Assembly (NCBI GenBank): GCA_977016875.1
Contig: CDRNST010000114.1
Location: forward strand, 558,001 to 622,000
Direction of reading: 5' to 3'
Length of the DNA: 64,000 bases
Origin: Pavona decussata
Taxonomy: Eukaryota
Under the pieces are notes generated by a model. It did not search any database and was not told the DNA's origin. It worked only from the letters and a program-made list of their open reading frames with translations. A program made the position numbers and the translations under genes. Below are positions 33,501-56,224 of this stretch, in pieces. How positions within the stretch are numbered: position 1 is the first letter of the stretch; every line of letters starts with the position of its first letter.

Positions 33501-36500
33501 TAGATTTTTTCCAGGTTAGCTTAAAATTGAGGTCTGCTGAGGATGTAGGCTGTTATCAGTGTTCCTAAATACATGTATGCACTTATTTTCTTCAAAGCAA
33601 AAGGTGCCTGTTACTGATCCAACAACTGGTTCAATATGGCTGTGGTCCCTTCCTAAACATGTAACTATATCTAACAAGACCATACTCTGAGCAAATACAA
33701 ACCCTGTTCTTGGTCTGCTTATTAATTTTTTTCAAATGCCAGACAACGAATGGTTCATTTATATTTTTGTCTTTTCCCTCGTCTTCCAGATAATAACCTG
33801 TTTTAATCTTTAGGCTCACCAGGTTCTTATTAATTATGTAATGGGGCTTTAAAATACCAAACTTTTAGCCTGCTGGCCTGGTTGTTCAAAGAGCGGATAA
33901 CTTTATCCAGTGGATAAATCGCTATCCAGCAGGTAAGATGTACTCCAACCGATACATTTTTTATGCTGTATGAAGTTATCAGCTCTTTGAACAACTGGGC
34001 CCAGGTGTTTAATCCACTAGGTTCTTATATGCGGATTTTCATTGTTGTAGTCTGTAGAGTTGTTATTGCTGTTCCTGCTGCTACTGTTGTTATTTATATT
34101 TTTGTCATCTGCCCCTGGTTGTACAGATTGGCTTTTAGTCTTTGGGCGCTTTTCATTCGTCAGAACTGGCGGGCCAGACCGACCAGTTCGTAAACGGAAA
34201 ACAATCTTAGATGTAATCTACAGGTAGCCAAGCTCCCTTTACCTCGCTGCTTTCTGAAACACTCCTGTACTGTTGTTGAAGACCACTGACTGAATCTTTC
34301 AAGACTTCATTCTCTACAAACAGCTTCTCAAATTCTTCGGCTGTTTCCTTTGAAAGCAAAGATAATGAATCGATCATCACTCTTTAGAACTCACCATACT
34401 TAACAAAAATTTCATCAACTGTCACATTTGCCTGACATTTGCTACTTATAGCACATTCAACAATTCAGTCCAGCCTCTTGACTTTCCACTAAATTACTAT
34501 ACCATCAAAATAATGTATTATGACAGCTAAAGAGGGTGAGTGTTGTAAAACCCAAACCACTCTGACCAATCACAAAAAACGCAAACAGTGCAACAAATCA
34601 ATCAGAATTTGAAGCAAAAACATGTACCGGCATCAAACACAAGAAAACGTGAGTGCACAAGTCATGATTTGTCTTGGTTTTGTTTATGATTGACCGAAAA
34701 AGTGGTGCAAGTTTTGCCAACCAATCACAGAGCATATAAAAGCAAAACAAATGCAAACAAAATATGACTTTCGACACTCACATAAAGGCTGTTCTCACAT
34801 AAACTAAAGGCAGAAATGGTACTGCCAGCTTAAAGTCTTGGATAGAAAATCTTTTTTGTTTGTTTGTGTTCTCTAGTGTTACACTGTATAAGCATTACTG
34901 AAACCCCTCCCCTCAGAATGCTGTTTAGATGGCATCAATGAAAGAGAGAAGCTTAAAGACTTTTGTAAATCATGACGAGTTTTAATTGCGTTTTTTTTTC
35001 CCATCAGATGCAGCCCAAACACGTCCTGCTGGTTTTTCTTAAGTTGAAAACTACAATATTGGATCTCTTATGGAATAATGATACCTTGTTTTTCTGCTCC
35101 AGGGCTTGCAACTCCTTTCTACTGTCATTTAATGCCGCTTCAATGTCTTCTTTCTCAATCTTTACAACTGAAAGTGTCTTTCTTAATTCCTGAAAAAAAG
35201 AACATGGCTTCTGTCTTTAACAACAGAAAATGTTAACTTGCAAAATCGAAGTGGTTCCCTCCTAAGTCAAGATGATTATTGTAATGTTATCCAAAGAAAA
35301 ATTCATGAAACTGGCAGCAACCAAATCATTCAGTATAAAAAGAAACACCAAACAAAATAAGGATCCATTGTACAGGATTCAATTTGGATCTGTGTCAAAA
35401 ATTTTAACGATAGATCTGTCTTTGGCTTACACTGACTCTGGTTTCTGGGCAACCTATATCTGTGCAGCTTCAGTTGTACTGTGCTGTTTTGAATCTGTAC
35501 ACATCCCAAATCTGTACAGTACCAGTAAGGTGTGAAAACTATGTTGTTTCCTTAGAAACTTTGCTCCACATTGGCTCTCTTCACCCAGGTGTATTATAGG
35601 CTATCGGCAACACCCCTCTAGGGGTAACCCTGTGATGGACTAGTTGCTTCATGCTGGGTACCCTGTGATGGACTAGCATCCCATCCAGGGGGAGCAGCAA
35701 TACTCCTACTTGCTTCATGCTTCAGAAACTGGTTTAAGCTCTGGCCGTTTGGGAAACTAAGGCGACTTTACCCTTCATCATCACCATCATCATCATCGTC
35801 ATCATCATAACAATAATAATAGTCTTCATCTTTGATTTTTGAAATGTCACTCCCTTGATGCAACCAGTTTTAATAAATGCACTTATTTAGCTTGATAAAT
35901 CTGTTTCTAAACCTCTTGCTCATGTTCAATGTACATGCACTCCTTGAACTGTGACTGTCATTCCATCACAAAATTAATGGTTTAGTAAGAGCATGACAGT
36001 AAACATTGCTCAAGTACCTTGACTGGCATCTTGCTTAAATCTTCCTGAGATGAACTCATGTCTTTCAACTTGTTCTTCAGCCTCTGAATGTTTTGACAAA
36101 TTATTTGAGAACAGATATTATATTTAAAATAAAGTTTATTGTTACCTAAAAATCAGTGTTCAATTAAAATTTGAGAGATTTCATTGCATTATAATAACAT
36201 TAACAAAAACCCTGATGTGGCAATCTTCATGCACTGATTCAGGTATTTGTAATAGTAAGGAAAATAAAAACCCAAAGTCGTGCCAAGGATTGTGTCCAAA
36301 TTGAAAAACATTGGACAGAACAGTGCTGCTTGTTGACTTAAATATCCTTTACCACTGTTATAAGTTGAGGTGAACATCTCACTTTCTATGCAGCCATTTT
36401 GAGCTGTCACACAAGAGAAGATATAGTTCCGTAAATTCAGGAATTATTGTAGACATTTGTATGAAGAAGGGCAAAACTTGCCCGTTTCTACATGATCGTC

Positions 36501-42700: not shown

Positions 42701-45700
42701 GTGATGTTTTTGTTGCCGTTGCCGTTGTTGTTGCTTAAGCTCCCTAACATGTGAATCCCAGCTTTGGATCTTGGAAGAAAATGATTACTGACACAATGCT
42801 GCAACTGTAACAACCAACCATTCAACAACCAAATTGCTCACCCTTATCTCTAGCTCTGCTCTCTCACTGTTGGAATCACCAGACACCTCCAGGGCCTTAA
42901 CAAGTTCTTCCTTTTCCTCCATCAACTTTGCCACTTTGTCTTGAAGCTATAGATTAAATTCAACAAGGTTCAAGCAATCAAGATGAACTCTAGATACAAA
43001 AAAGGCCAGTTCTCTCAAAGTGCCAACACCCAATGATTTTTTCCCTACAGTCCAACATTTGCAACTTACTCAATACAGGACACCACCCCCTCCCCTCCCC
43101 CAATCAAAGGCAATAACAACAATAACTTATTACTCATTCTGTACATATTGATCAAATGTACATGTACATTACACACTGAAATCTAAAACTCTAGACCAGA
43201 ATTTCCAGTGAAGATATATTAATAAACAATACTCAACCTGATCTGAAAAACTTAATATAAAGCCACAGTATCAATAAAATATCCCATAATATAACTGATT
43301 TTTAGAAATCTAATAAAGAAATACATGTACAGCATCAAGAGAATATCCGAGGAATCTAGCCTTTGCCACCAACTAAAGGTCTCCAAGTCCACAAATAAAA
43401 ACTGAAACAGATTTGTAGAGGCATGGCAGTGGAGTGGTTGCCACATTAAAGGGTTGGTGCAATGGACTAGTAAACATCCCATCATAACGACAAATATTTA
43501 CACAGGATAACACATCAGTGCAAGAAGCAAGTTATTAATTAAAAGGGGTCCCGTGGAATAATAACTACTACGTAGTACTTATTGCAGAAAACAGAGCAGC
43601 CTAGGGAAATACGAAAAAAAGAGACAAAGAAAGGGAAAGGGGGAAAGGGCTCTGCCCTAACTACCGTATTTTTTTGGTTATAAGGCACACTCAGTTTTAA
43701 GACACACCATTAACTTTAAAATTAACTTAAAACAAATTGTAACAAGTTTGCAAAATGAAACTTTCATCTACTGGTGTAAATACCCAGTTATAAGACGCAA
43801 CCAGAATTACAGGAAATTTTTTTACCACATTCACTGTAACTACAACAATCTGCTTCCAAATTTGCTGATTACCGTCGTTTCGCGCACATTTTTCAAGCAT
43901 ATCTTCTTCCATGTCAAACTTACCCAAAAGATTTTCAGTTGAATTCATGAGGCCTTTTCATGTCTTTTGTGTTGACTTATGATTGTGTCTACTGGGTCAC
44001 TTCAACCTTACTGTGGTAACCATGAGGCAAAAATTTGCAAACATTTGGCATTCAGACAGGAATCCAAGCACCCTTCTATAAGCTGAGTACTCTTACCTCA
44101 CTCATTGCTACCACAGAGTCAGTATTCTCAACATTGGTTGATTGCTGGCTTTTTGCAGAATCAATCTTCATTTCCAGCTCCTGCAAGCACAAGAATAACA
44201 TTTTCAAATCACATTTGGGATCTTAAATCAGGCCCTAAAAATGCCAACATGATCATTGTTATTATTGTAACCCCCTACAGCTGCATAAATAAACCTGACC
44301 CATAAGACCTTACATGAAAACACCCTCCCACACAATAGCCCCAGGTTAAAATGCAAAACCTTAAAGACAAGAGTTGAAGTTCTTGCTTCTTTTTAGCCTT
44401 AACACTTATGTGCTTTTGATCAGTGAATCTGTTTGGCTGTTGAAGATTTTGAATATGCTCAACTTTTCATTAGAATCTGTGGAAGTCACTGATTTAACCT
44501 CTACTTCTCATGTAGTCTTGTCAACTTGCAATGCTTGCAATCCTTATGAATCTGAATTTTTGTTGACTCTCATTCTTATAATCTGGTCCAGGCTACATGC
44601 TTTCCCTATGAAATGATGTCTAAGAATATTGAATCTAAAAAGTCTAGGACATCCCAGGTCAGGGTTTAAAGCCTTTTGTAATCAGTAAGAAAATTTTGGG
44701 CATTAGGTTTCCCAGATGTGGCTCAACGAAATGTGGTTAAATGTTGCAACAGAAAAAGAAAGAGGGATGCCTGATCACAAACTGGACAACAAACTCAATC
44801 CAAGGCCACTCTCCACATCTACAACATACATGTAGGAGGCAGAAACAGGCAAAGTTTGGAATTACTAGGAAAGGGAAGTACAGTGGGGGGCTGTGTACAG
44901 CTGTAGCATGTTTAATAAGTGAACAAGGGCATGTGGCTGAAGTGTTCACAAACAGTTCTCACCTTGCAGTTTTCTAAGAGCTGCCATTTCTCTTGTTCAA
45001 GTTTTGTTAATGTGTCTTGAGATTTTTCTTTCTCTAACTGGAGTTCCTATTAAAAAGTGGACGAGGAATAATCAATGCCACAAGTTTTCAAATAACTACA
45101 TTGTAAGCATAAGATACAAATTTGATGCCCTCAAGGTACTGCCAGCAGGTGGTAAGACAGTTAGTAGTTTAATTAGAGAAACATAACAAAATGTACATGT
45201 ACACAGATATCACTAAGAGCCAGCTACCAGCAAATTACGCTGTCTGAAAGATATCAAATATCCCCAGCAGAAATTTCAACACAACACAAAATACTTGAGG
45301 CTTATTTTAAAGGTGCACAGTCCAAAAGGGCTGGCTGGGTTTATTAATTAATGAGCCTGCGAATGTTTATCTTAGCTACATTTCCACATGTTTGCTAGTT
45401 TGGAACTGAGTAAAGGAAAATCTACCTGAATCTTCTGCAGCAGGTCTTGATTATCCCTTTTTAGCTGTTCCTGTGTTTTGTCCTCTTGAAGAGCTTGCAG
45501 TTCCAAAGCATCTTTGTACTTCTGTATTTTGTCACAAAGGAATTAAAATTTCCTAAAATTAATGGGTTATTCAGATAACAAAATTTGAGTTTTTTTACAT
45601 GTCAAAAATAAGCTGCCATTTCTGTGTACAGCGGAAGCTCTCTTAACGGACACTCTTGAAGGCGGACAGCTCTACTTACCTCCCATACAAACTCTGTATT

Positions 45701-48700
45701 TACACATTCCTGTAAGCTGACATTCCCATAACTGGCCACAGACACTTTCAGGGGTTACTTTTCCTTTGTTTTTAAGCTCCCATAAAGGGACCCCCGAAAG
45801 GAAATTCCAAGAAAAGCCCAACAAAACGCGATAAACTAGCCACGCAACGAAAAACGCTGAGTAGAGGAAATTTCCGAGCACGTGCAAAGGAGCACGCCTA
45901 AACTGCAAGAGAATACCGCTGGCCACGCAACTGCCTGCAGACCAGAACCAGGCCCCAACCAGTAATGTAACAACAAATCCCCAAACGCTAAATAAATGTG
46001 CTACCCGTGCTCAAACTATACGCCAATAAACGCTAACGCCTCGCTACGCCACGCCACCAAGGAGCAAACTTGCACCAAGTTGTTAACTAAGTTAAATTAC
46101 ATTTAACCCTATTTTAATCAATGAACCTTGGATCGTTGTTCCTCACAATGATTTTACAGTGCAGTTATTTACTTCAGTTATCTCCATTATCGCCGCAATG
46201 TATAAGGCAATAAAACAAAAATAAAATCATGTAATATGGTGTTTTTTTTTTTTTTGGCATTTCCAATGTTTACATGTATCATTAGCTTGGCAAGCTCCCG
46301 CAAACGGCCAGCTACACCTCTAGTGCCCACTTACAAGAACCATTCTCGTAAGCAGCCAGCTCCAGTTACGGACACCTTTTCCACGTCCCGAGGGTTTCCA
46401 CTGTAGATATAATAAAAAATGGGCATCTGAAAGGCATTTTTCACTGCATACCTTTGCCTCCTTAACAACAGTTTGATATTCTTCCTGTAGAACTCTAAGA
46501 GATTGCTGAAGTCCATCTCTCTCCATCACAACAGCAGAAATATCTTCTTCAAACTCCTATACAAGTTCAATTTATTATTTTACAATTAGCAAAGCTACGA
46601 GACTCAGCAAGGAATACTATTTTTTTAATTACAATTCATTAAAATAACAACAGCATAGTACTTTGTTAATCTTCAGTTAAAAAACACGAACTAACTTGTG
46701 AGTTAACACTGGTTTGTTGAAGCTTGTTTGTTTTTCTTTTCTTTTCTATTTTACAAAGATCTTCCATCCTAGAAAGTAGTTAGTACCCAAGGAAAATGAC
46801 ATTATTGCTCTTGCTAAACAATCAGAACTGGTCTACATATCATTGCTAGAGTACCAAAATAAAAAATAATAATTATTATTACTTCAACAAGAAATGGTTT
46901 CAAAGAGTATTATTATTATATTATTATTTTCCTCACAATGATTTTGAAAGATATTTTTTGAATTCATCTTTTTACTCACTGTTCACAAATCAAACTTTCT
47001 TATTCATTTATTCATTCATCTCTTCGTTTAATATTCATTGATAAATTATTTATTTATTTACTTATTTATTAGTGCTGAAAAATGCCCATCCCCTTACTTT
47101 GACTGTTTTCTCATGTTCATGTTCCAACTCACTGTACATTCCCCGTAAACCATCATTTTCTTCAAGCATCTTCCGTCCAAGTTCAGCAGCCATTTTTAAC
47201 TCTTGGTTTTTCTTTAAAATCTGATTAATGAGAGGTTGATAATCTTTGAATTTAAACATTATATTTAGACAACCTTTGTATGTTTTTATCCGAACAGTAG
47301 CTTAAGGCTTCAATTGAACATTTAATATTTATCTTATATTATATTTAGAGTACTGTTATTTTTCTAGCATTTAAAGCTCACAGTACTTAATAAACCCTTA
47401 GTGTTTGCAGTTAACAAACTTTCAGTGCAAGGAAACTGCTTATAACAGATCAATGAAATTATTAGAATAGCATTTATAAAGTTAGAATACATATGCACAA
47501 GTGTCAGAAACACTTCATATTTGAAATTGTTTGAATTTTAAGAAATCTACTTCCTATTTTTGTTTAAAAGATAACGTGATTCATACAATTTAATAAGAAT
47601 TTCTGTGCTTAAATTTCTATTACAGTCGAACCTCCACTAACGGCCACCTCTCCACAATGGCCACATTTTTTTGTCCCGGCAGACAGTCCATACATTACCT
47701 CTTGTATAAACAACTCTACAACGGCAACGGCCACTAAAGTGCATCCCCGACTGCCAAAATAACCTCTCGATATCCACCAGTACAGTTCTTTTTTGCAAAA
47801 ACCTTTTTTTATAAACTGATGCAGTAATCGACATTTGTCTTCGGAACATTATATACGTATTTTGATTGTGTTCCATTTATATGCTGCTGAGTAAGCATAA
47901 ATTTTCTGCAATAATATAGCCAATGTTGCAAACTTTGCTCGTTTCGTCTTGTTAACATTTTGATTCAAAGCATTATTTATGTTTTATTGCGTATTTTATC
48001 TATATATATTATTTAAGATTGGATTACCATTATAGGCTACAGTAAGCATGAACTTGGCACAATAAACATGTTGTACTTCCTGAAAAAAAGGTGTCATATT
48101 ACACCCCTACCTCCCCATAACGGCCACCTCTCCGCAACGGCTGCTTTCTTATGTCCCCAAGGTTGCCGTTGTGGAGAGGTTCAACTGTATTTAATGCTTA
48201 TTAAATTAATGTGCTGTCACTGATAACTGCTCCCCTCTTCATAATTACCTTGAATTTCCAATCAAACATAGTTTTTCATTGTCCTTCTTTAAAAAGAATC
48301 TTTGAAAACCTGCCTACACATTTATCTCTTAAATCTGAAAACCATAGTCACTTTAATTAAACTTTGAAAGAACTAAAGAAGACATTCAAATTATTTTAAA
48401 AAGCCCACTCTTTAATTCCAACAGCCTCATACTTGGTCACTTTACTATTTTTAACATGCTCTTGCCATTTCTGACAATAGTCAACTTACACCCGTAATTT
48501 ACTGACATCCCACAAACCCAGCTACAAAGGGCAAACAGTGAGTTCTTATCCACTCTTGAAATGGGAAATGTACAATAATTATAATAATATATGATATACT
48601 TCAAATTCGTTTTTGGTTTGAAAGTTGTGAAATCAAAATCAAACTGGTTTATGGTGATATGAAAACAGATAATATCACATCAGACAAGTATGGGAAATAT

Positions 48701-51700
48701 TAACACATAGCTGCCTATTGCACTGTTTGGTGGTACTGTACAAACTCTGAATATAATAATTCTCCCAAGTTTAAAATCTGCCATTATATACACTACAGTG
48801 CATGCACTTCTCTGTACCTTATCTTTTTTCTCAAACTCAGCATGCACTCCTCTGGACAGCCACTCTCTCTTCTCATTTTCTAGTCTTTGTACCTCATTTC
48901 TTTCCTCCTCCAGATGTGATGATAATTCTATATGACATTATCCAACAATAACAAAAATATTAATGCCATGCCCCATCTACATCTGCAACTTTGCATTTCC
49001 AGAACTACCAAAAATACAAATAAAGACATGAAAACCCATCTACAGGTAGGCATAAACTGGAAAAAAATTGGAGCAATTTTGATTAATTAAACAATTAATT
49101 TATATGTGTCTAATGATCACATAGGCATAACAACAAGGGGAATATTGCTTAATAAACACAGACAATAAATTATCTGAGAACAATAATTATTGTTCTGATA
49201 ACAAATTATAAGTAACAAGTTCAATTCAAACCAAGGAAGGGCTAAACATTTTGTACATTTTTGGGGGAGTTTAAAATTTTTCAAACCAGTTTAATTTTCA
49301 TTTTTGTTTAATATGCAGTATTCATTACCATAATCTGAGACAAAGGGGAATAAAAATCAAACTGGTTTGAAAATTTTTACACCAAAAAAAAATTTTGAAC
49401 CTGACAGCATACACATATTAGATATGTAAAAGATCAATAGATAAGGTAACATTGTAGATTTCAACTTCAAGCTGAATGTCAAACATTAGCACTGTAGTGA
49501 TTTTACATGTACTTCTATGTTACACTGTAATTGTTGAAATTTACACAGTTGTTGTCTGATAGCACCACTGAGCTGGAAAACTTCAATGCTTAAGGTAACC
49601 ATACATTTTAAAAACTTAAAACTAATATGTAATTCACACTTTACCTTCGCATTTTGCTTTGGTTTGCTTCAATAGAGCAAGTTGTTTCTTGACATACTTT
49701 ATGAGGTCTTCTTTTGGAAGTGACTCAAGCTGTGAGACAAGTATTAAGCAAAACAATTCAATAATGAAATACTGAAATACAAAGTCTGGCAAACCAATAA
49801 TAGCCAGCTAACCTTTGAAACATTACAGCACTGATTTAAATTGCTTTGTTACAGAAAGTATCTATACCCCTCCCAAAGAAGATTTTTTCTTTTTTGACAA
49901 AAAGACACACCACCCCTCTGAAGAAATGTCAATTTTGTTTTATACTTTCCTTTAACAACTTTGACTTTAAAAAGGAAATTTCAGTATAAAAGGGGTCTGG
50001 CCTGGCCTGACCATTCTCACCTTCAGTTGACAATAAACCTTCAAAGCATAAACAACTTACAAACAACATGCGCCTTTTTCTATGACCATTACTGATAAAA
50101 TTGGCTTGCTTTACGGAATAATGCCTGTTGTTACTGAATTAGAAACTGATGTCTTATTAATATTGCTATGATTAATAAGAAAGTCTTATTAATATTGCTA
50201 TGCAAATACTTCAACTTAGCTTTCTCTATCACTATAGAAATAAAGTTAACTATGTTCCAGTACAAAACCTTACATGATATAGTTTTTACTAGAAGCAAAT
50301 TATTTAAAGCTAATTTGGTGAGCAGTGATCTTTGCTATTTATGTTCAAAAACAAAACAAGATCCAAAACATATGCTTGTTTTATGTCCGGTAGTATCAAA
50401 GTTCTGGAAAATCTTTCTGGAATGGTATGAGACTCATACTGCCATAAAACTAGAATTGTCAGCCGCAAAAATCTTATATGGTATCATAGATAAGGCCCAC
50501 CTTTGTAATTTAACTAATCACCTCCTACTAATTGCGAAATACTATATATATTGTTGCAGCAGTATTAATGAAGAACCTTTGTCTTTTAGTATTTATCTAA
50601 CAATAGTGATAAGCAAAGCTGATATCGAAAAACAAATATCAACAACGACTAATTCAAATGAACGCTATTCCAATAAATGGAAACCTTTAATTGACAAAAA
50701 ATTTGTAACCTAGAGCTGTATATTACATTTCTTTGTACTTTGTAAGATATAACGGAAATAAGCAAACCATAGTAGTGAATGTAATTGTATTCTTTTTTGT
50801 TCTTTCGTTGTATTCTAGTGTATTGTAAGTATTATTTGTACATATTGTAAGGGTAATATAGATATTGTCATTAAAAAAAAAAATTAATACTGCTATGGCA
50901 CCATGATATTTTAAGGCACATTTTTTTCAAAACAGGCTTGACTCAAAAAATAGTCATGATTGAAGAGTGTCTAAATTAGCATTTCACGCCCACAAAGGTA
51001 TGAAAGGAAGACGGAACCTGCCCTTTTATAGTGAAACTTCTTGTTTAAGACTTCCCACCCCATTGTAACTTTACACGTATGTGAGGAGGTAACCTGTAAT
51101 CAGGTACAATTTTAGCAGTGCTCTCTTATTTTAATCCTAATTTACTAAATTTTGCATTTCCCGTGCCTTGAAGAAATTCAAACAGAACATGATCACAGGT
51201 TAGTGGGCAAGGGTATTCGCAAGAAGAAAATTTTAATCAGATGCTTTGCATACCTGTGATTTTCCTTGAGGTTTCATTGGGGTGGTGCCTGATGAGCCCT
51301 CCTTCTTCACCCCTTTAGTTACACCAAGGGGGTCAGTGTCATTCTGTCACAAGTTAAAACAATAATAAATTGATTAATGTATTATATTGGGGCGAGAAAA
51401 GCTTAGTACACTCCTGTCATATGGTTTGTCTGTTGCATAGATTCCTGTCCATCAGAATGTACAGTGTAACGAGTGACACAAGAGTGACAAGACATTGCTG
51501 CGTAACTTGTCATTTTGTGCATTTGAAATATACCATAATTATATATGAGGGTATATTGCAAACTCACAATATGACCAGCTCCCAGTTGGCTTGATAGCTC
51601 AGGTGGTAGAGCACTGCACCAGTGTCACAAAGGTCATGGGTTTGGATTCTGTTCAAACCTGACTTTTTTCCAGGCTTTCTTTTCGAAACTGCTGTGTATA

Positions 51701-53189
51701 TACAGTGTAACTGTTGTAGGTTAATATGAATCCCAGGTTAAAATGATTTCAACCTACATGTAGGTTGATTTGTATTTTCTTTTGTTTCAGATGTAAATTG
51801 CCCAACCTTAACAAAGGAAAATACAAATCAACCTAGGTTGAGATCATTTTAACCTGGATTCATTTTAACCTTCAACATAACTGCCATGATCATTCAATTA
51901 CTCATTTAAGAATTTTCATGTCAAAAGATAGTCACCATGTATATAACATTCAAAATGACTGATATAACAGACCATGTTAACCACTTAAGAATTTGGTGTG
52001 GCAAAGCAGTAGTATGACGTGTGAGGCTCTGCTACTACTGTGCAGCAAGACACTAGTTAATTATTCATCTGCACAGCAGTAACACCACTTGGTTTCAGAG
52101 TTGATTATGAAATCTGAAACTGGCCTTAATGTTAGATCTGTTGTATAATAAAATAATTAATATTAGGAAATGTAAAGTTCAAGAGATGGGTGCACTACTG
52201 CTTCAATTACTGCAACAAGCAGAACCAAGTTCTTATTTCTATATTTCCAACAATCATTGACAGACATGTTTCACATAAAAATCAATTTCATGGAGCCAGA
52301 TGAAACATTTGCTGAGTTCTATAGCTAAAAATCCCAGATTTAATGTAATTTAATTTCTCTTATTGAAATATAGACAGGAAACATTCACTCTCATTGCTTT
52401 GGAAATTATCCAAAAAAGTACCATGTGCCTTATGAAATTTGAAACCTACCAGGACACAAACTAAAAATGTTCGATTCAACACCTAAACAGTACCTCATCC
52501 ACTTTGTCTGCTTAACAATAATATTACACAACAAAGCGAATAAAACAAAGATCGCTAGTTTATGGTCTTCGTTATATGATTTCCGGAAATAAATGCATAA
52601 GCTTATATCTGTTTCTCGAAAGTGAATTTTTATCGTTATAAAAAAAAACTAAATCATAAACCGTGAAGATAATTTTGCTGTGAAATACTTTTCGTAGCTT
52701 GAACAAACATTTCACATTTTGTCATATTTTTCAATGAGTTTTTAACACCGTTTAAACAAGAGATTCCTTTACTTTCAGCTGCTGATTTGCAAGCTATTGT
52801 ATCAATGATCAAACTCGACAAGTTCGTTGAACTACGATCAATTCGTAAGAAACAAACTGATAAACAAGTCGATGATACCTTAAATACACTTGAAGGATTT
52901 AAACGGCTTAGTGGTGGTGTTTAAAAGAAAAGAAACCAAGCATGTAAACACACGCGACCACTCTTCAATGCGATCAATGAACTTCAAATAACGTCATTTC
53001 AAGCTTTCGAGCATTCGAGAACGACTCGAGAACGCTAACCGGAAACGAAAAGCTGAATTGGTTTTTTGCTATTATTAAAAAAGAAATATATTTCTCAGCA
53101 GGAATTTCAACTGAAAACCACATGAATAACAAATGTCAAGCTTAGGTTAATAAAGTCAGATAGGGTGCACTTACAATCGCGGCAGCCAT
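488..53189 (-). CDS. GCC2: GCC2/GCC185-like GRIP and coiled-coil golgin, 53 coding exons in window, 3'-incomplete (continues off left edge)
   Basis: Phase-consistent GT-AG exon chain, ~7.24 kb CDS. Peptides match my recollection of GCC2 landmarks in the correct order: GKSQLESLPKEDLIKYVKKQ (N-terminus), KMNKFKQVAVKAKKELE, SLMSLEMEDYQ, KMKSVLVKTKKELAEAK, EFESYKTRVHSVLKQQK. Confidence 0.88.
618..694 (-). CDS. GCC2: GCC2-like exon 52
   Basis: 77 nt, TRVHSVLKQQKSKPSPQPVELENSE. Confidence 0.9.
1166..1297 (-). CDS. GCC2: GCC2-like exon 51
   Basis: 132 nt, LRSSTESNRRSVEGLETKLAKVKAEWESSKLAHEATRAEFESYK. Confidence 0.9.
1849..1896 (-). CDS. GCC2: GCC2-like exon 50
   Basis: 48 nt, VEISSLTAESQSYQQQ. 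Confidence 0.82.
2317..2394 (-). CDS. GCC2: GCC2-like exon 49
   Basis: 78 nt, LMEQEVTGSQLKGQLESATQQAEEYK. Confidence 0.88.
2614..2714 (-). CDS. GCC2: GCC2-like exon 48
   Basis: 101 nt, MVDSQRQQAEERALKMKSVLVKTKKELAEAKKQ. Confidence 0.9.
3333..3495 (-). CDS. GCC2: GCC2-like exon 47
   Basis: 163 nt, EANQSSLMSLEMEDYQKSLEALQTKL...DFKAQI. Confidence 0.88.
4144..4308. mobile_element. Palindromic MITE
   Basis: CCAAAATGGCTA / TAGCCATTTTGG and ATTCAAATTAGC / GCTAATTTGAAT inverted pairs. Confidence 0.65.
4347..4460 (-). CDS. GCC2: GCC2-like exon 46
   Basis: 114 nt, LLSKLENSEEDLTEERRRHEETRNQLETTKRQLEAAEK. Confidence 0.88.
4856..4963 (-). CDS. GCC2: GCC2-like exon 45
   Basis: 108 nt, ILKTESDKDGQEIGALENELAATTEELEQVSKENNE. 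Confidence 0.85.
5230..5412 (-). mobile_element. tRNA-derived SINE
   Basis: Minus-strand A/B boxes TAGCTAAGTCGG ... GGTTCGATTCCC followed by a non-tRNA body. Confidence 0.75.
5621..5704 (-). CDS. GCC2: GCC2-like exon 44
   Basis: 84 nt, VVERERTDSKAEQEKLNTQIQEFIKEVE. Confidence 0.82.
5873..6028. mobile_element. Palindromic MITE, same family as 20688-20832
   Basis: ATATCAAAC...CCAAACACC...TGCGCCTCGTTTTT...GTGTTTGATAT. Confidence 0.7.
6462..6582 (-). CDS. GCC2: GCC2-like exon 43
   Basis: SSDSVTQIEEELANARQGAEKLSIENESLSKNYEALLK(AR); a GC donor giving an exon end at 6468 is likely. Confidence 0.8.
6881..6936 (-). CDS. GCC2: GCC2-like exon 42
   Basis: 56 nt, ELQNQLSKLQEELETEKS, ends phase 2. Confidence 0.85.
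7367..7489 (-). CDS. GCC2: GCC2-like exon 41
   Basis: 123 nt, WKEEKDELSSTIEGLKEDAQTLNEQFVKQQEETLKQTSEYQ. Confidence 0.85.
7612..8005. mobile_element. MITE with ~55-bp TIRs (PIF/Harbinger-like)
   Basis: GGCCCTATTTACATGGAGGGAGGAAGATC... mirrors ...GATCTTCCTCCCTCCAAGTGAACAGCCC; internal CTAG-rich subrepeats. Confidence 0.8.
8577..8677 (-). CDS. GCC2: GCC2-like exon 40
   Basis: SLVRESKEKDDKMNKFKQVAVKAKKELETQKKQ (GCC2 landmark). Confidence 0.9.
9593..11333 (-). CDS. GCC2: GCC2-like exon 39 (large 1741-nt coiled-coil exon)
   Basis: Lies within ORF 9501..11354; E/K/L/Q-rich heptads; CAG acceptor, phase-1 GT donor that fits exon 40. Confidence 0.92.
11670..11777 (-). CDS. GCC2: GCC2-like exon 38
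   Basis: 108 nt, DLSGRLAEVQSGQLSTESQHYQQLSDLQEINSGLQQ. Confidence 0.82.
12297..12380 (-). CDS. GCC2: GCC2-like exon 37
   Basis: 84 nt, ELNDYVEQLHEELDDLHVQFDALSKEHK. Confidence 0.85.
14123..14206 (-). CDS. GCC2: GCC2-like exon 36
   Basis: 84 nt, HQEAEIEELFRTQDDLQAKYNDELREKK. Confidence 0.85.
15812..15895 (-). CDS. GCC2: GCC2-like exon 35
   Basis: 84 nt, ESRQEIQELENKIKQLSKDLNDANDEKA. Confidence 0.85.
16400..16838 (+). mobile_element. Degenerate LINE 3' end
   Basis: SFRYFAAKTWNALPDSIRT...EF, then T-rich 3' UTR and AATAAA at ~16829. Confidence 0.7.
16845..17115 (-). mobile_element. Degenerate LINE 3' end (opposite orientation)
   Basis: CTVFMSIFPKSISDWTTL resembles the RT C-terminal FFP..I..WN.L motif; followed by 3' UTR-like sequence. 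Confidence 0.55.
17495..17599 (-). CDS. GCC2: GCC2-like exon 34
   Basis: 105 nt, DLRQQLSMAQNDNEQAKQSLVIAEEQHKTLNTKLE. Confidence 0.85.
18991..19035 (-). CDS. GCC2: GCC2-like exon 33
   Basis: 45 nt, SVFSKRMKELELKQR, TAG/GTAATG. Confidence 0.6.
19253..19357 (-). CDS. GCC2: GCC2-like exon 32
   Basis: 105 nt, ALNAQLLSLSQEKGTLLNELIALQDNFLQEQSTTT. Confidence 0.78.
20158..20262 (-). CDS. GCC2: GCC2-like exon 31
   Basis: 105 nt, DLKNQFAALAEENISLESHFKNLRSALQTAEETEE. Confidence 0.82.
20389..20493 (-). CDS. GCC2: GCC2-like exon 30
   Basis: 105 nt, DLERKLATVSEEKVALEAKIKTAEEQLKGAEENNK. Confidence 0.85.
20688..20832. mobile_element. Palindromic MITE (related copy at ~5873-6028)
   Basis: ATATCAAACAC..GTTTCATCAGATATCCAAACA mirrors TGTTTGGATATCTGATGAAAC..GTGTTTGATAT. 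Confidence 0.8.
21236..21322 (-). CDS. GCC2: GCC2-like exon 29
   Basis: 87 nt, DLDMKLTTFQEQAKTVENGKDQEYEQRNK. Confidence 0.78.
21496..22249. mobile_element. CAGT...ACTG MITE (Tc1/mariner-like) carrying a nested element at 21510-21906
   Basis: CAGTCGAACCTCCCTT / AAGGGGAGTTCGACTG ends; host sequence interrupted at its TTAA. Confidence 0.75.
22460..22564 (-). CDS. GCC2: GCC2-like exon 28
   Basis: 105 nt, ELEQSLLVKEEELRKIQSKAAEMEQDLNTALQEKQ. Confidence 0.85.
23849..23953 (-). CDS. GCC2: GCC2-like exon 27
   Basis: 105 nt, DQSKALQESVQNNEHLENRIQSLEEMTRNGEDVNK. Confidence 0.85.
24492..24596 (-). CDS. GCC2: GCC2-like exon 26
   Basis: 105 nt, ELWDQIKSASSEDSKLQGMVESLEKMLHDSEGKYQ. Confidence 0.85.
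24640..24803 (-). mobile_element. tRNA-derived SINE with 10-bp TSD
   Basis: TAGCTCAGTGGTAG...GGTTCGACTCC on minus strand; CTAGTAGATG at 24630-24639 and 24804-24813. Confidence 0.8.
25032..25241 (-). CDS. GCC2: GCC2-like exon 25
   Basis: 210 nt, ELTSSLEIFTQERNDLR...LKTADKEKQ. Confidence 0.88.
25805..26014 (-). CDS. GCC2: GCC2-like exon 24
   Basis: 210 nt, ELNVKLINATQEKEDLL...LETLEKEKQ. Confidence 0.88.
26098..26300 (+). mobile_element. tRNA-derived SINE (internally deleted)
   Basis: TAGCACAGTAGGGAGAGCAC...GGTTCGATTCC head, then body. Confidence 0.75.
26395..26604 (-). CDS. GCC2: GCC2-like exon 23
   Basis: 210 nt, ELQQKIEDISRDRDELL...LQVEQKEKE. Confidence 0.88.
27269..27373 (-). CDS. GCC2: GCC2-like exon 22
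   Basis: 105 nt, DNQKKLEKLVAERGKLQKALKSAEEGRNEVLKQNQ. Confidence 0.85.
27505..27841. repeat. 106-bp tandem repeat, ~3 copies
   Basis: AAAGCTACTGAG recurs at 27521, 27627 and 27733 (period 106). Confidence 0.95.
27882..28128. mobile_element. MITE
   Basis: CCTGGCCCCAGCTGTTCAAAGGCCGGATAACTTTATCC mirrors GGATAAAGTTATCCGGCCTTTGAACAACTGGACCCTGG. Confidence 0.85.
28165..28281 (-). CDS. GCC2: GCC2-like exon 21
   Basis: 117 nt, DGQKQLQFAQSERNKVQSAYDALKKQWEEHFTTCGKGNK. Confidence 0.8.
28530..28704. mobile_element. MITE
   Basis: AGAGTGTTTTCACATGACGT / CACGTGAATGAAAACGCTCT ends; duplicated CCATGTTGGTGTCC. Confidence 0.75.
28748..28888. mobile_element. Palindromic MITE
   Basis: CCCATTTTACAGTTGTGT..GACCTGGCC mirrors GGCCAGGTC..ACACAACTGTAAATGGG. 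Confidence 0.8.
28907..29176 (-). CDS. GCC2: GCC2-like exon 20
   Basis: 270 nt, DVKEIEVLTAEKKDLAKSVSDLQEKL...ELKTETDKNK. Confidence 0.88.
29684..29779 (-). CDS. GCC2: GCC2-like exon 19
   Basis: MLKGQLEDLSSAIKETGKNPEQTTQNSEEQ(AR); exon ends at 29684 with a GT donor or at 29690 with a GC donor. Confidence 0.75.
30780..31545 (-). mobile_element. 5'-truncated LINE (CR1/L2-like RT C-terminus plus 3' UTR)
   Basis: KVLGVTIQSNLKWDSHV...KASKRLHILR...IRSVLEYCCPV...ERVQKRALRII...TERFEKSFFP. Confidence 0.9.
31700..32905. mobile_element. Repeat element with internal direct repeats, (CGACTGAT)n and terminal hairpin; possibly Helitron/Helentron-like non-autonomous
   Basis: CCATTCTT..ACT..AAATG.T.GTCAAATTATTCT.TACA at ~31749, ~32483 and ~32662; AACTCGT...ACGAGTT stem at 32865-32900. 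Confidence 0.45.
33030..33134 (-). CDS. GCC2: GCC2-like exon 18
   Basis: 105 nt, AAKKQLECVVFEKDELSLSLKSFQEEHNKVLQQNE. Confidence 0.85.
33873..34005. mobile_element. MITE, shorter member of the 27882-28128 family
   Basis: GTTGTTCAAAGAGCGGATAACTT / AAGTTATCAGCTCTTTGAACAAC TIRs. Confidence 0.8.
34243..34347 (-). CDS. GCC2: GCC2-like exon 17
   Basis: 105 nt, ETAEEFEKLFVENEVLKDSVSGLQQQYRSVSESSE. Confidence 0.8.
35085..35189 (-). CDS. GCC2: GCC2-like exon 16
   Basis: 105 nt, ELRKTLSVVKIEKEDIEAALNDSRKELQALEQKNK. Confidence 0.85.
35540..35775 (+). mobile_element. SINE body fragment with internal duplication and (CAT)n tail
   Basis: CACCCAGGTGTA...GGGTAACCCTGTGATGGACTAGCATCCCATCCAGGGGGAG..ATACTCCTA...GACTTTACC. 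Confidence 0.75.
36018..36083 (-). CDS. GCC2: GCC2-like exon 15
   Basis: 66 nt, RLKNKLKDMSSSQEDLSKMPVK. Confidence 0.75.
36663..36712. repeat. (TTA)n microsatellite
   Basis: ~16 perfect TTA units. Confidence 0.95.
36844..37074. other. Assembly gap (N run)
   Basis: 231 consecutive N. Confidence 1.
37273..37356 (-). CDS. GCC2: GCC2-like exon 14
   Basis: 84 nt, ELGDQLNKVKAEKEKALKSLKTLKVNHD. Confidence 0.85.
38736..38810 (-). CDS. GCC2: GCC2-like exon 13
   Basis: 75 nt, SHQQEVEEGLDTAVKENEENKFYVK. Confidence 0.75.
39161..39580. mobile_element. MITE with TIRs
   Basis: AAGCAGCCTTCACACGGCAAACTT / AAGTTTGCCGTGTGAAGGCCGCTT. Confidence 0.85.
40414..40518 (-). CDS. GCC2: GCC2-like exon 12
   Basis: 105 nt, LLRSDLELARIESEHLRNALETMRTDYEGREAAAR. 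Confidence 0.85.
41749..41916 (-). CDS. GCC2: GCC2-like exon 11
   Basis: 168 nt, DLKAQLQKLSVEKNECQSKLDQL...ANEELKEKNE. Confidence 0.85.
42365..42746. mobile_element. MITE (TAGGGAG...CTCCCTA)
   Basis: TAGGGAGTTT..AGCAACGACGACGGCAAC mirrors GTTGCCGTTGTTGTTGCTTAAGCTCCCTA. Confidence 0.85.
42842..42946 (-). CDS. GCC2: GCC2-like exon 10
   Basis: 105 nt, LQDKVAKLMEEKEELVKALEVSGDSNSERAELEIR. Confidence 0.85.
44097..44180 (-). CDS. GCC2: GCC2-like exon 9
   Basis: 84 nt, ELEMKIDSAKSQQSTNVENTDSVVAMSE. Confidence 0.8.
44963..45046 (-). CDS. GCC2: GCC2-like exon 8
   Basis: 84 nt, ELQLEKEKSQDTLTKLEQEKWQLLENCK. Confidence 0.85.
45426..45521 (-). CDS. GCC2: GCC2-like exon 7
   Basis: 96 nt, KYKDALELQALQEDKTQEQLKRDNQDLLQKIQ; acceptor has a weak pyrimidine tract. 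Confidence 0.7.
45629..46403. mobile_element. CAG...CTG MITE with TA flanks (Tc1/mariner-like)
   Basis: TA-CAGCGGAAGCTCTC ... GAGGGTTTCCACTG-TA; internal CGGACA/TAAGC subrepeats. Confidence 0.7.
46452..46556 (-). CDS. GCC2: GCC2-like exon 6
   Basis: 105 nt phase 0, EFEEDISAVVMERDGLQQSLRVLQEEYQTVVKEAK. Confidence 0.85.
47098..47220 (-). CDS. GCC2: GCC2-like exon 5 (CC1-box-like)
   Basis: 123 nt, ILKKNQELKMAAELGRKMLEENDGLRGMYSELEHEHEKTVK. Confidence 0.85.
47623..48187. mobile_element. CAGT...ACTG MITE with TA TSD (Tc1/mariner-like)
   Basis: TA-CAGTCGAACCTCC ... GGAGAGGTTCAACTG-TA; ACGGCCACCTCTCC subrepeats. Confidence 0.85.
48818..48927 (-). CDS. GCC2: GCC2-like exon 4
   Basis: phase 1 to 0, LSSHLEEERNEVQRLENEKREWLSRGVHAEFEKKDK. 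Confidence 0.85.
49645..49729 (-). CDS. GCC2: GCC2-like exon 3 (conserved N-terminal motif)
   Basis: LESLPKEDLIKYVKKQLALLKQTKAKCE, ends phase 1. Confidence 0.92.
50203..50882 (+). mobile_element. 5'-truncated L1/Tx1-like LINE 3' end (zf-RVT) with poly(A) and TSD
   Basis: FQYK.LH.I...C.LC....H.L..C....FW motif; poly(A) at ~50873; ATTAATAYTGCTATG at 50188-50202 and 50883-50897. Confidence 0.85.
51254..51343 (-). CDS. GCC2: GCC2-like exon 2
   Basis: CAG/GTATG, 90 nt, NDTDPLGVTKGVKKEGSSGTTPMKPQGKSQ. Confidence 0.8.
51575..51695 (+). mobile_element. tRNA-derived SINE fragment
   Basis: TAGCTCAGGTGGTAGAGCAC...GGGTTTGGATTC. Confidence 0.7.
51713..51878. mobile_element. Palindromic MITE/hairpin
   Basis: TGTTGTAGGTTAATATGAATCCCAGGTTAAAATGAT mirrors ATCATTTTAACCTGGATTCATTTTAACCTTCAACA. 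Confidence 0.8.
53175..53189 (-). CDS. GCC2: GCC2-like exon 1 (MAAAI)
   Basis: AAATGGCT start context followed by donor GTAAGT, phase 0, compatible with exon 2. Confidence 0.6.
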
Positions 53190-53627
53190 TTATCACATCA
53201 GAGATTGCGCGTTTCGAGACAGTTGCCTCCAAATTTCGGTGATCCTCGCACGAAACCACGACCACAAAAAAATCCCTTTTGCTCCTGTTTCCATGCAAAA
53301 TGTTACTGCACAGGCTCCATTAGTTTTTGTTCCTTTCTCTCAGAAAGACAACACGCAGTTCCCGGTGTTTTGTATTGGAACGAAACTCCACGTCAATGTT
53401 GAGCCGCTGTATTAAGCGGACTAAGGAGAATTGCCGAAAAATATGCGCATTATATATTTGCGCATGTAGACGTGTCTGGCCTCGTTATGGCGCTGTGGTC
53501 GGGAGGACACTGGAACCAAACAGCGGGAAATTTCCTTCATGAGGAAATGTTGTGTTTGTTGCAAGGTAGCAGAAGATTCTCCTTTAGTTTTCTTCGGATT
53601 TTGCCGTCGAAAGCTGGAAATAAGACA
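53190..53627. promoter_or_regulatory. Putative bidirectional promoter between GCC2-like and TREX-like genes
   Basis: Divergent start codons ~440 nt apart; relatively CpG-rich; TGCGCAT motifs at ~53444 and ~53460. Confidence 0.6.
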
Positions 53628-54398
53628 ATGATAGGTGCCTCACAGTTTTCAACATTTATCTTCCTCGATCTTGAGACCACTGGATTACAAAAACCCGTGG
53701 AAATTACCGAACTCAGCATGATAGCTGTAGAACGAAAGCACATAATCGAAAGTTCAATGACGAAGACTACTCCTCGTTTACTCGACAAGTTTACAACTTG
53801 TGTCCGACCTACTAAAGAGATCGGCTGGTTTGCCTCTTCGTTGACTTGTCTATCAAATGAAGATCTTGAAAACAGGAAGGTTTTTGACATCGAGCTCGGA
53901 AAAATCGTCCGATCTTTCATCATGAGACAAGCTCAACCGGTTTGTTTGGTGGCTCACAATGGCGATAGTTTTGACTTCAAAATTCTTGTTTCTGGACTGG
54001 AAGCTGTGGGAATAACATTGTCTGAGAGCGTACAAGCCTCTGATTCGCTCAAAGCTTTCAGAAAGCAACACAAGGAATCTAAAGATAACTTAAATAATGA
54101 TGGTAACGGTGCAGCTACGGCTGGTGAAGGAAAACGATTTTCTTGCTCGTTGAGTAATTTGTACAACACTTTTGTTGGGGGTGAATTTGAGAACGCCCAC
54201 AGTGCCGAAGGAGACGCCTTGGCTTTGTTACGTCTCGTTGTTCATAAACCAGATATCATGGAGTATTTAGGAAATGGAGCTCATAAATTGTTTTGCCATA
54301 ACAGTGGAGAAAAGTCGACATCACAGCAACAGAAAGTGACTTTGAATGAAAAGGATATTAAATTAACCAAGTGCAGGATGAATACTTTTCACAGTTAG
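53628..54398 (+). CDS. TREX1: Three-prime repair exonuclease (TREX1/TREX2 family, DEDDh), intronless, 256 aa
   Basis: Exo I FLDLETTGL..EITEL, PRLLDK, RQAQPVCLVAHNGDSFDF (Exo II), SLSNLY, AHSAEGDALALL (Exo III). The ATG at 53628 sits just before Exo I, as in TREX proteins. Confidence 0.9.
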   Translation: MIGASQFSTFIFLDLETTGLQKPVEITELSMIAVERKHIIESSMTKTTPRLLDKFTTCVRPTKEIGWFASSLTCLSNEDLENRKVFDIELGKIVRSFIMRQAQPVCLVAHNGDSFDFKILVSGLEAVGITLSESVQASDSLKAFRKQHKESKDNLNNDGNGAATAGEGKRFSCSLSNLYNTFVGGEFENAHSAEGDALALLRLVVHKPDIMEYLGNGAHKLFCHNSGEKSTSQQQKVTLNEKDIKLTKCRMNTFHS

Positions 54399-55249: not shown

Positions 55250-55880
55250 AACATACATACATAAACTTTATTTAAACTCGAATTATCAGAGTAGCTCTAT
55301 TAAGCTAATATCTTCAAGAAAGAAATACATAAATAAAATAAATTATTGAAATACAATGATTAAAAATACTACAAATATAATAATTAAAACAAATACTATA
55401 AGCTTTATGGCTGTCTTAAAATCTTTAAATGATGTTATTGTTCTCATACTGTCTGGGAGCGAGTTCCACATTTTTGCAGCTTGATATCGGATGCATTCAA
55501 GTCCATAATTAGTTGTTCTTGGTATAGGTAAGGTCAAGATATTCTTTCCTCTTAATGAATAACTGGAGTTACGGAAAACAAATAGTTCTTTTAGGTATCC
55601 AGGATATGTAGAAACAAATAAGCTCTTGAAAACTACCATAAGAATTTTGTGAAGTCTTCCATTGTATAATGATACTGTCTTTGCTTTCTTTAACAGTTCA
55701 TCGTAACCAGACAATGAATCTTTAAAAATAAATCGTAAAATACTTTTGTTCAAAGACTCCAGTTTATCATAATTTCTGGTGCCAGAAAAATGCCAAATAA
55801 GAGAGCAATAATAAAAGTGTGGTAGGATAAAAGCCTTGTATAGACGTAGCATAACCTTACTAGTAATGATGTTTTTAAAT
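55250..55880 (-). mobile_element. 5'-truncated LINE (CR1/L2-like RT C-terminus)
   Basis: LYKAFILPHFYYCSLIWH...YSLRG...TTNYG..IRYQAAKMWNSLP; (TATG)n tail at ~55250. Confidence 0.88.
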
Positions 55881-56224
55881 CTAAACTCGTAATTAAACAT
55901 TGCTTTATATGAAATTTCGTTACAGTGACAAAGTTGACCCTACCTAATTATTCATAATGATTTTGAAATATTTAAATCCTCATTTCCCCTTCTTTTTTAT
56001 ACCTTTGTTTAATTTGACTATGGTCAAACTTTATTGAAACTTGCCTCCTTTGATTCTTGTTTTACTCCAGTAAATGTTTTTTTGGAAAACAAATGTCATA
56101 TCACTCTAGTTAGAGTTGTTCTATCACTATGTCTTTATGTATAATTGATTTTCTTTCCTTTATTTAATCGCTGTAGGACTATCTAATTTAAATTTCACTT
56201 GATGTAAATGGTAATGATAATGTT

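Follow-up and report, generated by a model that had tools for sequence, protein, structure and literature searches.

We found that a coral golgin gene carries an optional exon whose product is, by sequence, a CC1-box-type segment, the kind of motif with which dynein adaptors bind the dynein light intermediate chain (LIC). The gene lies in a 64,000-nucleotide (nt) stretch of Pavona decussata DNA (contig CDRNST010000114.1, positions 558,001-622,000), here called the window; coordinates below are window positions unless prefixed with another contig. The gene appears to be orthologous to GCC2/GCC185, a GRIP golgin of the trans-Golgi, and its exon 5, which holds the CC1-like segment, is an in-frame alternatively spliced cassette exon. 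Few adaptor families serve the many cargoes of dynein, and the prevailing view of golgins is that they capture carriers as passive tethers. In exon 5, a motor-binding module already known from adaptors would sit in a type of protein new to it and come under the control of splicing. We lean, if only somewhat, towards the view that it is a splice-regulated LIC-binding module and that the isoform lacking it is a plain tether.

A sequence-only reading of the window had placed a CC1-like peptide at 47098-47220, and the peptide is encoded there, on the minus strand. Exon 5 comprises 123 nt, or 41 codons in phase 0-0, and specifies a 41-residue coiled-coil segment with ELKMAAELGRKMLEEN. Translating the minus-strand frame from 47223 downward yields ILKKNQELKMAAELGRKMLEENDGLRGMYSELEHEHEKTVK, preceded by Q and followed by V, and this contains the proposed peptide; the plus strand of the interval has stop codons in all three frames. 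Joints in RNA-run contigs fix the exon edges, with the acceptor cag/ at 47220 and the donor /gtaagg at 47098 (slashes mark exon edges here and below). MAAELG occupies exon residues 10-15, and its glycine lies at least 110 residues from the protein N-terminus. Reading the sequence for hydrophobic 3-4 spacing picks out L8, A11, G15, M18, N22, L25, Y29 and L32, and the residue spacing suggests a heptad assignment on this basis. The peptide had been described as following directly on the N-terminal motif exon; in fact exon 4 intervenes between that exon, exon 3, and exon 5.

To map exon joints, we placed contigs from four runs of four studies on 46100-52000. Of the words sampled from 46200-50000, RNA-type runs contain ~9%, close to the fraction that is exonic, and DNA-type runs 75-82%. 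The joints end in CT..AC on the plus strand, equivalent to GT..AG on the minus strand, and comprise 49729>51254, 48927>49645, 47220>48818 (runs X6 and X8) and 46555/6>47097/8 (X1, X6 and X8). Exon 5 is thereby joined to exons 4 and 6 in RNA-run contigs from three studies, and inclusion joints are present in X1, X6 and X8. The same three runs also carry a skipping joint, 46555>48817, which takes exon 4 directly to exon 6. Exons 3 and 4 together finish in phase 0, which is also the phase in which exon 6 begins, so both the inclusion and the skipping form stay in frame. In X6, the inclusion contig measures 183 nt, that is, the 123-nt exon with 30 and 29 nt of flank, and we read it as the bubble path expected of a k-mer assembly graph at an alternative exon. 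Contig depths in X1, X6 and X8 are comparable for inclusion (3.6, 6.2 and 17-34) and skipping (11.3, 4 and 27), although depth is a poor measure of isoform abundance. We rejected a retrocopy or paralogue as the source of the exon 4-to-6 joint because exons 4 and 6 are both single-copy in the 602-Mb assembly; exon 5 is single-copy in the genome as well. The claim of a golgin with a CC1 box therefore needs amending: the exon is real and transcribed, but the skipping joint, which had been missed, shows that it is not constitutive, so any dynein-binding ability would be confined to one isoform. Separately, an X1 contig (and one in X2) continues from exon 5 into the upstream intron at 47221-47402, yet is spliced to exon 6; such contigs represent intron-4 retention or pre-mRNA around the cassette exon.

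Searching the genome in six frames with an exon 5 profile revealed a single other place, C42:699447-699560 (E 0.003), whose open reading frame (ORF) reads ..YRQLAQKDKDLLLAAELGKALLDENKELNQKYELLQEEYSQAVE/gtaaga. This second exon matches the CC1 box of BICDR1 (E 4.7e-5), then TRAK2, as well as positions 68-113 of Pfam HAP1_N. The reverse search, started from this BICDR-type exon, returned exon 5 as its best non-self match (E 0.026). The two align without gaps over 41 residues by BLASTP, with 15/41 identical (37%) and 28/41 positive (68%), and their 3' ends coincide at one aligned residue, both in phase 0. Their Smith-Waterman score of 79 was reached by none of 20,000 plain shuffles (maximum 55) and none of 20,000 shuffles that preserve heptad position (maximum 77), and every other stop-free minus-strand segment of the window scored 50 or less against the BICDR-type exon. 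Profile searches against 177,635 PDB sequences pointed the same way. With the broader of two profiles (A2), the top four matches were BICDR1 entries (E 0.011-0.059; aligned residues 106-140), and its eight matches included BICD2 entry 6pse, a fragment co-crystallized with LIC, aligned on QAAEYG. Control exons 4 and 6 matched no adaptor in the PDB. An Atlas look-alike search with exon 5 retrieved mostly generic coiled coils; of the look-alikes, a HAP1_N cluster shares the most features with the exon and serves as a lead only.

These results bear on whether an ordinary coiled-coil exon might contain AAxxG by chance. The composition of coiled coils is biased, AAxxG is short, and it came to light in a scan that covered a very large number of windows; a Pfam search of exons 3-6, exon 5 included, gave no match. 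Nevertheless, we regard chance resemblance as very improbable, given the reciprocal best non-self matches genome-wide, the outcome of both shuffle types, the gap to the gene's other exons (50 or less versus 79), the specificity of the PDB matches alongside clean control exons, and a motif that is invariant under protein-level selection (below). The assignment of the AAxxG segment to the CC1-box type in the sequence-only reading is borne out at the level of sequence, and exon 5 is closest to the CC1 box of BICDR/BICDL adaptors. It may share ancestry with the BICDR-type CC1 exon, and, with the 3' exon boundary in common and the phase symmetric, the golgin may have gained it by exon shuffling from a BICDR-type gene; convergence or deep common ancestry is an alternative source of the likeness. 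Three side observations concern these searches. The third-best genome match to the BICDR-type CC1 exon, at C93:6680749-6680847, is an ORF reading ..DRELAGELGKSLLENNQELERKLEE.., with AGxxG in place of AAxxG. The coral BicD gene, at C204:2371889-2373892, is almost intronless, with Pfam BicD positions 9-717 in one uninterrupted 703-codon frame, and its CC1 box must be encoded further upstream, in an exon of its own. Finally, proteins P0007-P0011, which carry (Y/F)E(A/S).DGFRG(T/S)Y.EV..HE repeats, match the second half of exon 5 (NDGLRGMYSELEHEHE) with E 1e-6 to 1e-3; we rejected these 50% matches as relatives, since they are limited to that half through the DGFRGTY.EV..HE repeat, and the repeat family is probably unrelated to exon 5 and possibly of protist origin.

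Our searches ran exon by exon. Conservation of exon 5 was surveyed by an exhaustive search of its 41 residues against 1.84 billion protein cluster representatives. Six true relatives emerged, each a short ORF-style call from a genomic contig that continues past the acceptor (..NQ/ILKK) and the donor (VK/VR..). Two further word-indexed homologue searches brought the total to ~40 distinct fragments of 59-100% identity, every one of which contains AAELG; these searches returned genomic fragments only, with no transcript-derived spliced fragment among them. The acceptor cag/ and donor /gtaag are kept in relatives, and inclusion of the exon in other species rests on these conserved splice sites, not on RNA. 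In alignment A2, the invariant residues are A11, A12, E13, L14, G15, M18, L19, E21, N22, D23, L25, R26, Y29, L32 and H36, the first twelve of which (A11 to R26) are also invariant in alignment A1; Y29 becomes F in the most divergent fragments, which fall outside A2. The first half of the exon is nearly fixed, in contrast to a drifting second half. When three divergent relatives are aligned to the window, the exons match and the introns do not. Synonymous sites are saturated (proportion of synonymous differences, pS, 0.71-0.85; of nonsynonymous differences, pN, 0.16-0.20), giving a ratio of nonsynonymous to synonymous change (dN/dS) of ~0.08 for exon 5. Because the invariant core residues use 2-4 codons across species (four for L14, three for G15, two each for A11 and A12) and the flanking introns sit at the shuffled baseline across relatives, the constraint falls on the protein and not on the nucleotides. 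Comparative evidence of this kind shows the exon 5 core to be under protein-level purifying selection across deeply diverged relatives. A distant relative, represented by a 1.5-Mb contig, retains exons 2, 3, 4, 5 and 6 in the same order, with 41, 57, 81, 61 and 46% identity, and the two alanines and the glycine are preserved in this collinear orthologue too. The sequence-only reading had named loss of AAxxG in related species as grounds for rejecting its proposal; the motif is kept instead.

Both ends of the gene point to its identity. Exon 3 encodes LESLPKEDLIKYVKKQLALLKQTKAKCE, preceded by ..GKSQ of exon 2; its product presumably corresponds to the vertebrate GCC2 N-terminus, and its motif ..LPKEDLIK..KKQ.., for which Pfam has no model, recurs in diverged form in the collinear distant relative. 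At the other end, a GRIP domain (PF01465, 66.3 bits) occupies C114:553072-553194 on the minus strand, and its exon aligns to the golgin-245 GRIP domain in the PDB. The genome holds a single Rab_bind candidate (PF16704), which scores 22.5 bits, below the cut-off of 27, and lies 0.9 kb upstream of the GRIP exon; the top PDB match of this Rab_bind-like exon is 3bbp, human GCC2 (E 0.089). Conserved coiled-coil exons occupy the interval between the 5' exons and the GRIP end. The earlier call of a GCC2-type GRIP golgin is supported by a GRIP domain on the same strand, but that domain lies outside the window, ~4.8 kb beyond its low end. We accept the gene as the probable coral orthologue of GCC2/GCC185 and infer that the GRIP domain and exon 5 belong to the same transcript.

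How might exon 5 work? In CC1 boxes, changing AA to VV abolishes binding to LIC helix-1 (Gama 2017, PMC5379953), and F447A/F448A in LIC abolishes CC1-box binding (CDR2 preprint, PMC11580933). LIC is encoded by one gene in the coral; its C-terminal exon includes VLANFFNSLLNKK, with helix-1 intact (VLANFFNSLL). When exon 5 is included, its two alanines and its glycine would shape a pocket for the two phenylalanines of LIC helix-1, like the pocket in BICD2, Spindly and CDR2. This dimeric coiled-coil pocket, set back by at least 110 residues from the N-terminus of a rod anchored at the Golgi, would bind helix-1 and so let the N-terminal, cytoplasm-facing end of the golgin engage dynein; the skipping isoform would act as a plain tether. 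The inclusion isoform may only recruit or capture dynein, or may also activate dynein-dynactin motility. We also entertain, as a speculative and rather doubtful extension, a history in which a GRIP golgin gained a CC1-box exon, possibly by shuffling, and splicing came to toggle the protein between a passive tether and a LIC-gripping form. With such a grip, trans-Golgi membranes could be drawn toward the minus ends of microtubules. In another version, the golgin could seize the motor of incoming dynein-driven carriers and displace the carrier's own adaptor, a form of tethering by 'motor hand-off'.

Several observations weigh against a LIC-binding golgin exon, the missing Pfam match among them. 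Individual E-values of exon 5 against solved adaptors are marginal (0.011-0.6). No annotated full-length golgin or adaptor with exon 5 appears among the 1.84 billion representatives, and the matches range over coral-like genomic contigs only. The 5' exons are tied to the GRIP exon, ~52 kb away, by strand, order and conserved coiled-coil exons and not by a spanning transcript. A complex prediction with two exon 5 copies and the coral LIC helix-1 exon, folded as short peptides without alignments, scored 0.05, which is evidence neither for nor against the putative binding.

The remaining adaptor elements count on the same side. HBS1 consists of QxxH/Y ~30 residues after the CC1 box and an acidic patch 15-25 residues further on (PMC11580933). 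The exon 5-6 sequence contains no QxxH/Y ~30 residues after the motif: positions +27 to +31 after the glycine are acidic (EFEED, at the start of exon 6), with no Q before them at the right distance. A QEEY in exon 6 had been proposed as an HBS1-like site ~50 residues past the glycine. Residue counting confirms the position, with Q exactly 50 residues after the AAELG glycine, and the site is QDDH in the distant relative, a Y/H swap within the HBS1 consensus. Its candidacy as HBS1 is weakened by a spacing of +50 versus ~30, an exon 7 stretch 20-29 residues past QEEY that is only mildly acidic, and an exon type that is repeated. Because the ERD..L..LQEE[Y/H] exon type recurs lower in the golgin gene (tblastx), QEEY may be a structural repeat. 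Nor does the Spindly motif (L-phi-x-E-phi or JxxE-phi), expected ~260 residues after the CC1 box (PMC5379953), appear in conserved form, in an exon model that is incomplete between about +125 and +320. The KLFVE offered as weak Spindly-like support is present at ~34.3 kb, but EEFEKLFVENE here corresponds to EEFNNTLAEKE in the relative (tblastx against locus L022), and KLFVE falls ~400 or more residues downstream by the earlier reading's exon numbering and typical exon sizes, beyond the expected ~260.

We therefore consider it unlikely that, within the LIC-binding reading, the golgin is a full activating adaptor, with a CC1 box, HBS1 (QEEY/QDDH), a coiled coil along dynactin and a pointed-end contact, that drives minus-end-directed movement or positioning of trans-Golgi membranes. 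All the CC1-box evidence of exon 5 speaks for such an activator, as do the conserved Q-x-x-[Y/H] of exon 6 with its consensus-allowed Y/H alternation and the long coiled coil downstream. There is precedent in pericentrin, a large scaffold that contains adaptor modules; reduced element sets can suffice for activation by BICD2 and NINL, and JIP3 tolerates loss of the Spindly motif. Set against these are the displaced QxxY with its weak acidic patch, the recurrence of its exon type and the unconserved, distant KLFVE. The earlier designation of the protein as a candidate motor activator is accordingly unsupported, as neither a canonical HBS1 nor a conserved Spindly motif was found. As side observations on exon types, an exon at 33027-33125 on the minus strand (..FEKDELSLSLKSFQEEHNKVLQQNE) resembles the distant relative's exon 6 (E 2e-4), and relative loci L020/L021 have a further exon-6-like exon ~5 kb lower in the gene; this pattern indicates internal exon duplication within the golgin coiled coil.

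A different job for the exon, to which we assign a low probability, is that of a CC1-like segment, by descent or convergence, that does not bind LIC. The segment might instead contact a different partner, such as a carrier-capture factor, a Rab, an Arl or some other region of the golgin itself, or it might be a hinge whose use splicing controls. Strong conservation shows that exon 5 has a function, not which function. Golgin N-termini are known carrier-capture sites, and the second half of exon 5 and its neighbours are without canonical adaptor elements. A length of 41 residues is also not a multiple of seven, and inclusion would shift the heptad register between exons 4 and 6. The pattern of invariance, however, favours the LIC-binding reading: the fixed residues are those common to BICDR1, BICD2 and the coral BICDR-type exon (including A-A, G and the N seven later), and a hinge would not require them.

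Table 1. Mapped exons and motifs of the golgin gene in the window.
Feature	Position	Strand	Evidence
Exon 2, 90 nt; N-terminal low-complexity part ending ..GKSQ	51254..51343	-	X1 contig, joint 49729>51254, translation
Exon 3, 85 nt; golgin N-terminal motif LESLPKEDLIKYVKKQ...	49645..49729	-	Joints 49729>51254, 48927>49645; collinear exon in relative loci L020/L021
Exon 4, 110 nt; constitutive, upstream neighbour of cassette	48818..48927	-	Joints 48927>49645, 47220>48818, 46555>48817
Exon 5; CC1-box-like cassette	47098..47220	-	Translation, GT..AG joints, ~40 conserved fragments, dN/dS ~0.08
CC1-box-like core ELKMAAELGRKMLEENDGLR, exon 5 residues 7-26	47143..47202	-	Invariant residues; aligns on BICDR1, BICD2 and coral BICDR-type exon
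AAELG	47176-47190	-	Within core of exon 5
Exon 6, 105 nt; downstream neighbour, holds QEEY (46476-46487)	46452..46556	-	Joints to exons 5 and 4; single copy
Exon 7, approximate ends	45426..45533	-	tblastx versus relative loci L021/L022, 62% identity
Exon with KLFVE ('exon 17' of the sequence-only reading), approximate ends	34237..34365	-	tblastx versus relative locus L022

The window holds several neighbouring features. Upstream of the golgin's mapped 5' exons, and divergent from them, a 308-residue single ORF at 53472-54395 on the plus strand encodes a TREX-like protein with an RNase_T/DEDDh exonuclease domain (PF00929, E 1.2e-7), and a promoter region may be common to both genes. The golgin intron upstream of exon 2 bears, at 51419-51812, a very deep pile of RNA-run contigs, with a summed depth of up to ~2x10^5 in X2. 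Many loose ends of these contigs resemble a tRNA 3' half (..GGTTCGAATCC..), and the repeat probably belongs to a tRNA-derived short interspersed nuclear element family; ARAGORN called no tRNA in this deeply covered repeat at 51.4-51.8 kb. Retroelement debris is scattered through introns and flanks at 50168-50710 (+), 30966-31661 (-) and 55346-55900 (-), and consists of an ORF with a zf-RVT domain (E 3.6e-8) and two related ORFs of the reverse-transcriptase C-terminal type, one of the retroelement ORFs having a weak ALKBH8_N-like match. A run of N at ~36835-37090, either an assembly gap or a masked stretch, interrupts a golgin intron.

If exon 5 does bind LIC, a splice-switchable LIC-binding box in a golgin would link the trans-Golgi and the motor in a new way. 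The CC1-box family, lately enlarged by CDR2/CDR2L, would gain a further protein class, and the coral golgin would be, as far as our searches and general knowledge reach, the first known case of an adaptor-like protein whose motor-binding element is toggled by a cassette exon. Exon 5 would also serve as a handle, through presence or absence of the 41 residues or an AA-to-VV change, bearing on the hand-over of dynein-driven carriers to tethers. Should binding fail, exon 5 would still stand as an alternative module under strong constraint at a golgin's capture end. In the literature that we searched, no paper links GCC2/GCC185 or golgins to a CC1 box or AAxxG, and papers naming both GCC185 and dynein concern CLASP, Rab6-BICD2 or tethering. 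GCC2 was not seen in parts of the supplement of a human dynein BioID study, which is no evidence of its absence. On human natural killer cell lytic granules, GCC2 is reported to be needed for keeping the granules converged at the microtubule-organizing centre and Golgi (PMC11844255). Exon 5, if it binds LIC, would bear on that role, although the paper reads GCC2 there as a tether.

Vertebrate GCC2/GCC185 and the coral gene appear to agree in their order of parts, from an LPKEDLIK-type N-terminus through a long coiled coil to a Rab-binding-like segment and, at the C-terminus, a GRIP domain. Vertebrate GCC2 is not known to have AAxxG near its N-terminus; a '..LKKEN.KM..' stretch of human GCC2 may weakly resemble the start of exon 5, a lead that the exon could be ancestral and its motif lost in vertebrates. 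The CC1-box adaptors (BICDR1/BICDL1, and also BICD2, Spindly, HAP1/TRAK and CDR2/CDR2L) and the golgin exon have in common AAxxG in an N-terminal parallel coiled coil, with the flank pattern (D/E)L.(L/M)AA.LG(K/R)..L(E/D).N, and a glycine at least 110 residues from the N-terminus in the coral golgin is comparable to BICDR1. Unlike these adaptors, the coral protein carries its box in a GRIP golgin, on an optional cassette exon, with LIC binding that is putative, and with no canonically spaced HBS1 or conserved Spindly motif found.

Golgi membranes or Golgi-bound carriers are linked to dynein by golgin-160 and by Drosophila Lava lamp, and we know of no golgin among the Golgi dynein recruiters that uses a CC1 box. 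Rab6-BICD2 likewise links Golgi membranes or carriers to dynein (PMC11077774). In contrast to all three, the putative LIC-binding element of the coral would be an integral part of the golgin, with splicing as its switch. A parallel in architecture is offered by pericentrin, since both it and the coral golgin are very large coiled-coil scaffolds with embedded dynein-engaging motifs, candidate ones in the coral. Pericentrin has HBS1-like motifs without a recognizable LIC-binding domain, and the coral golgin presents the converse, a clear CC1-like box with an unclear HBS1.

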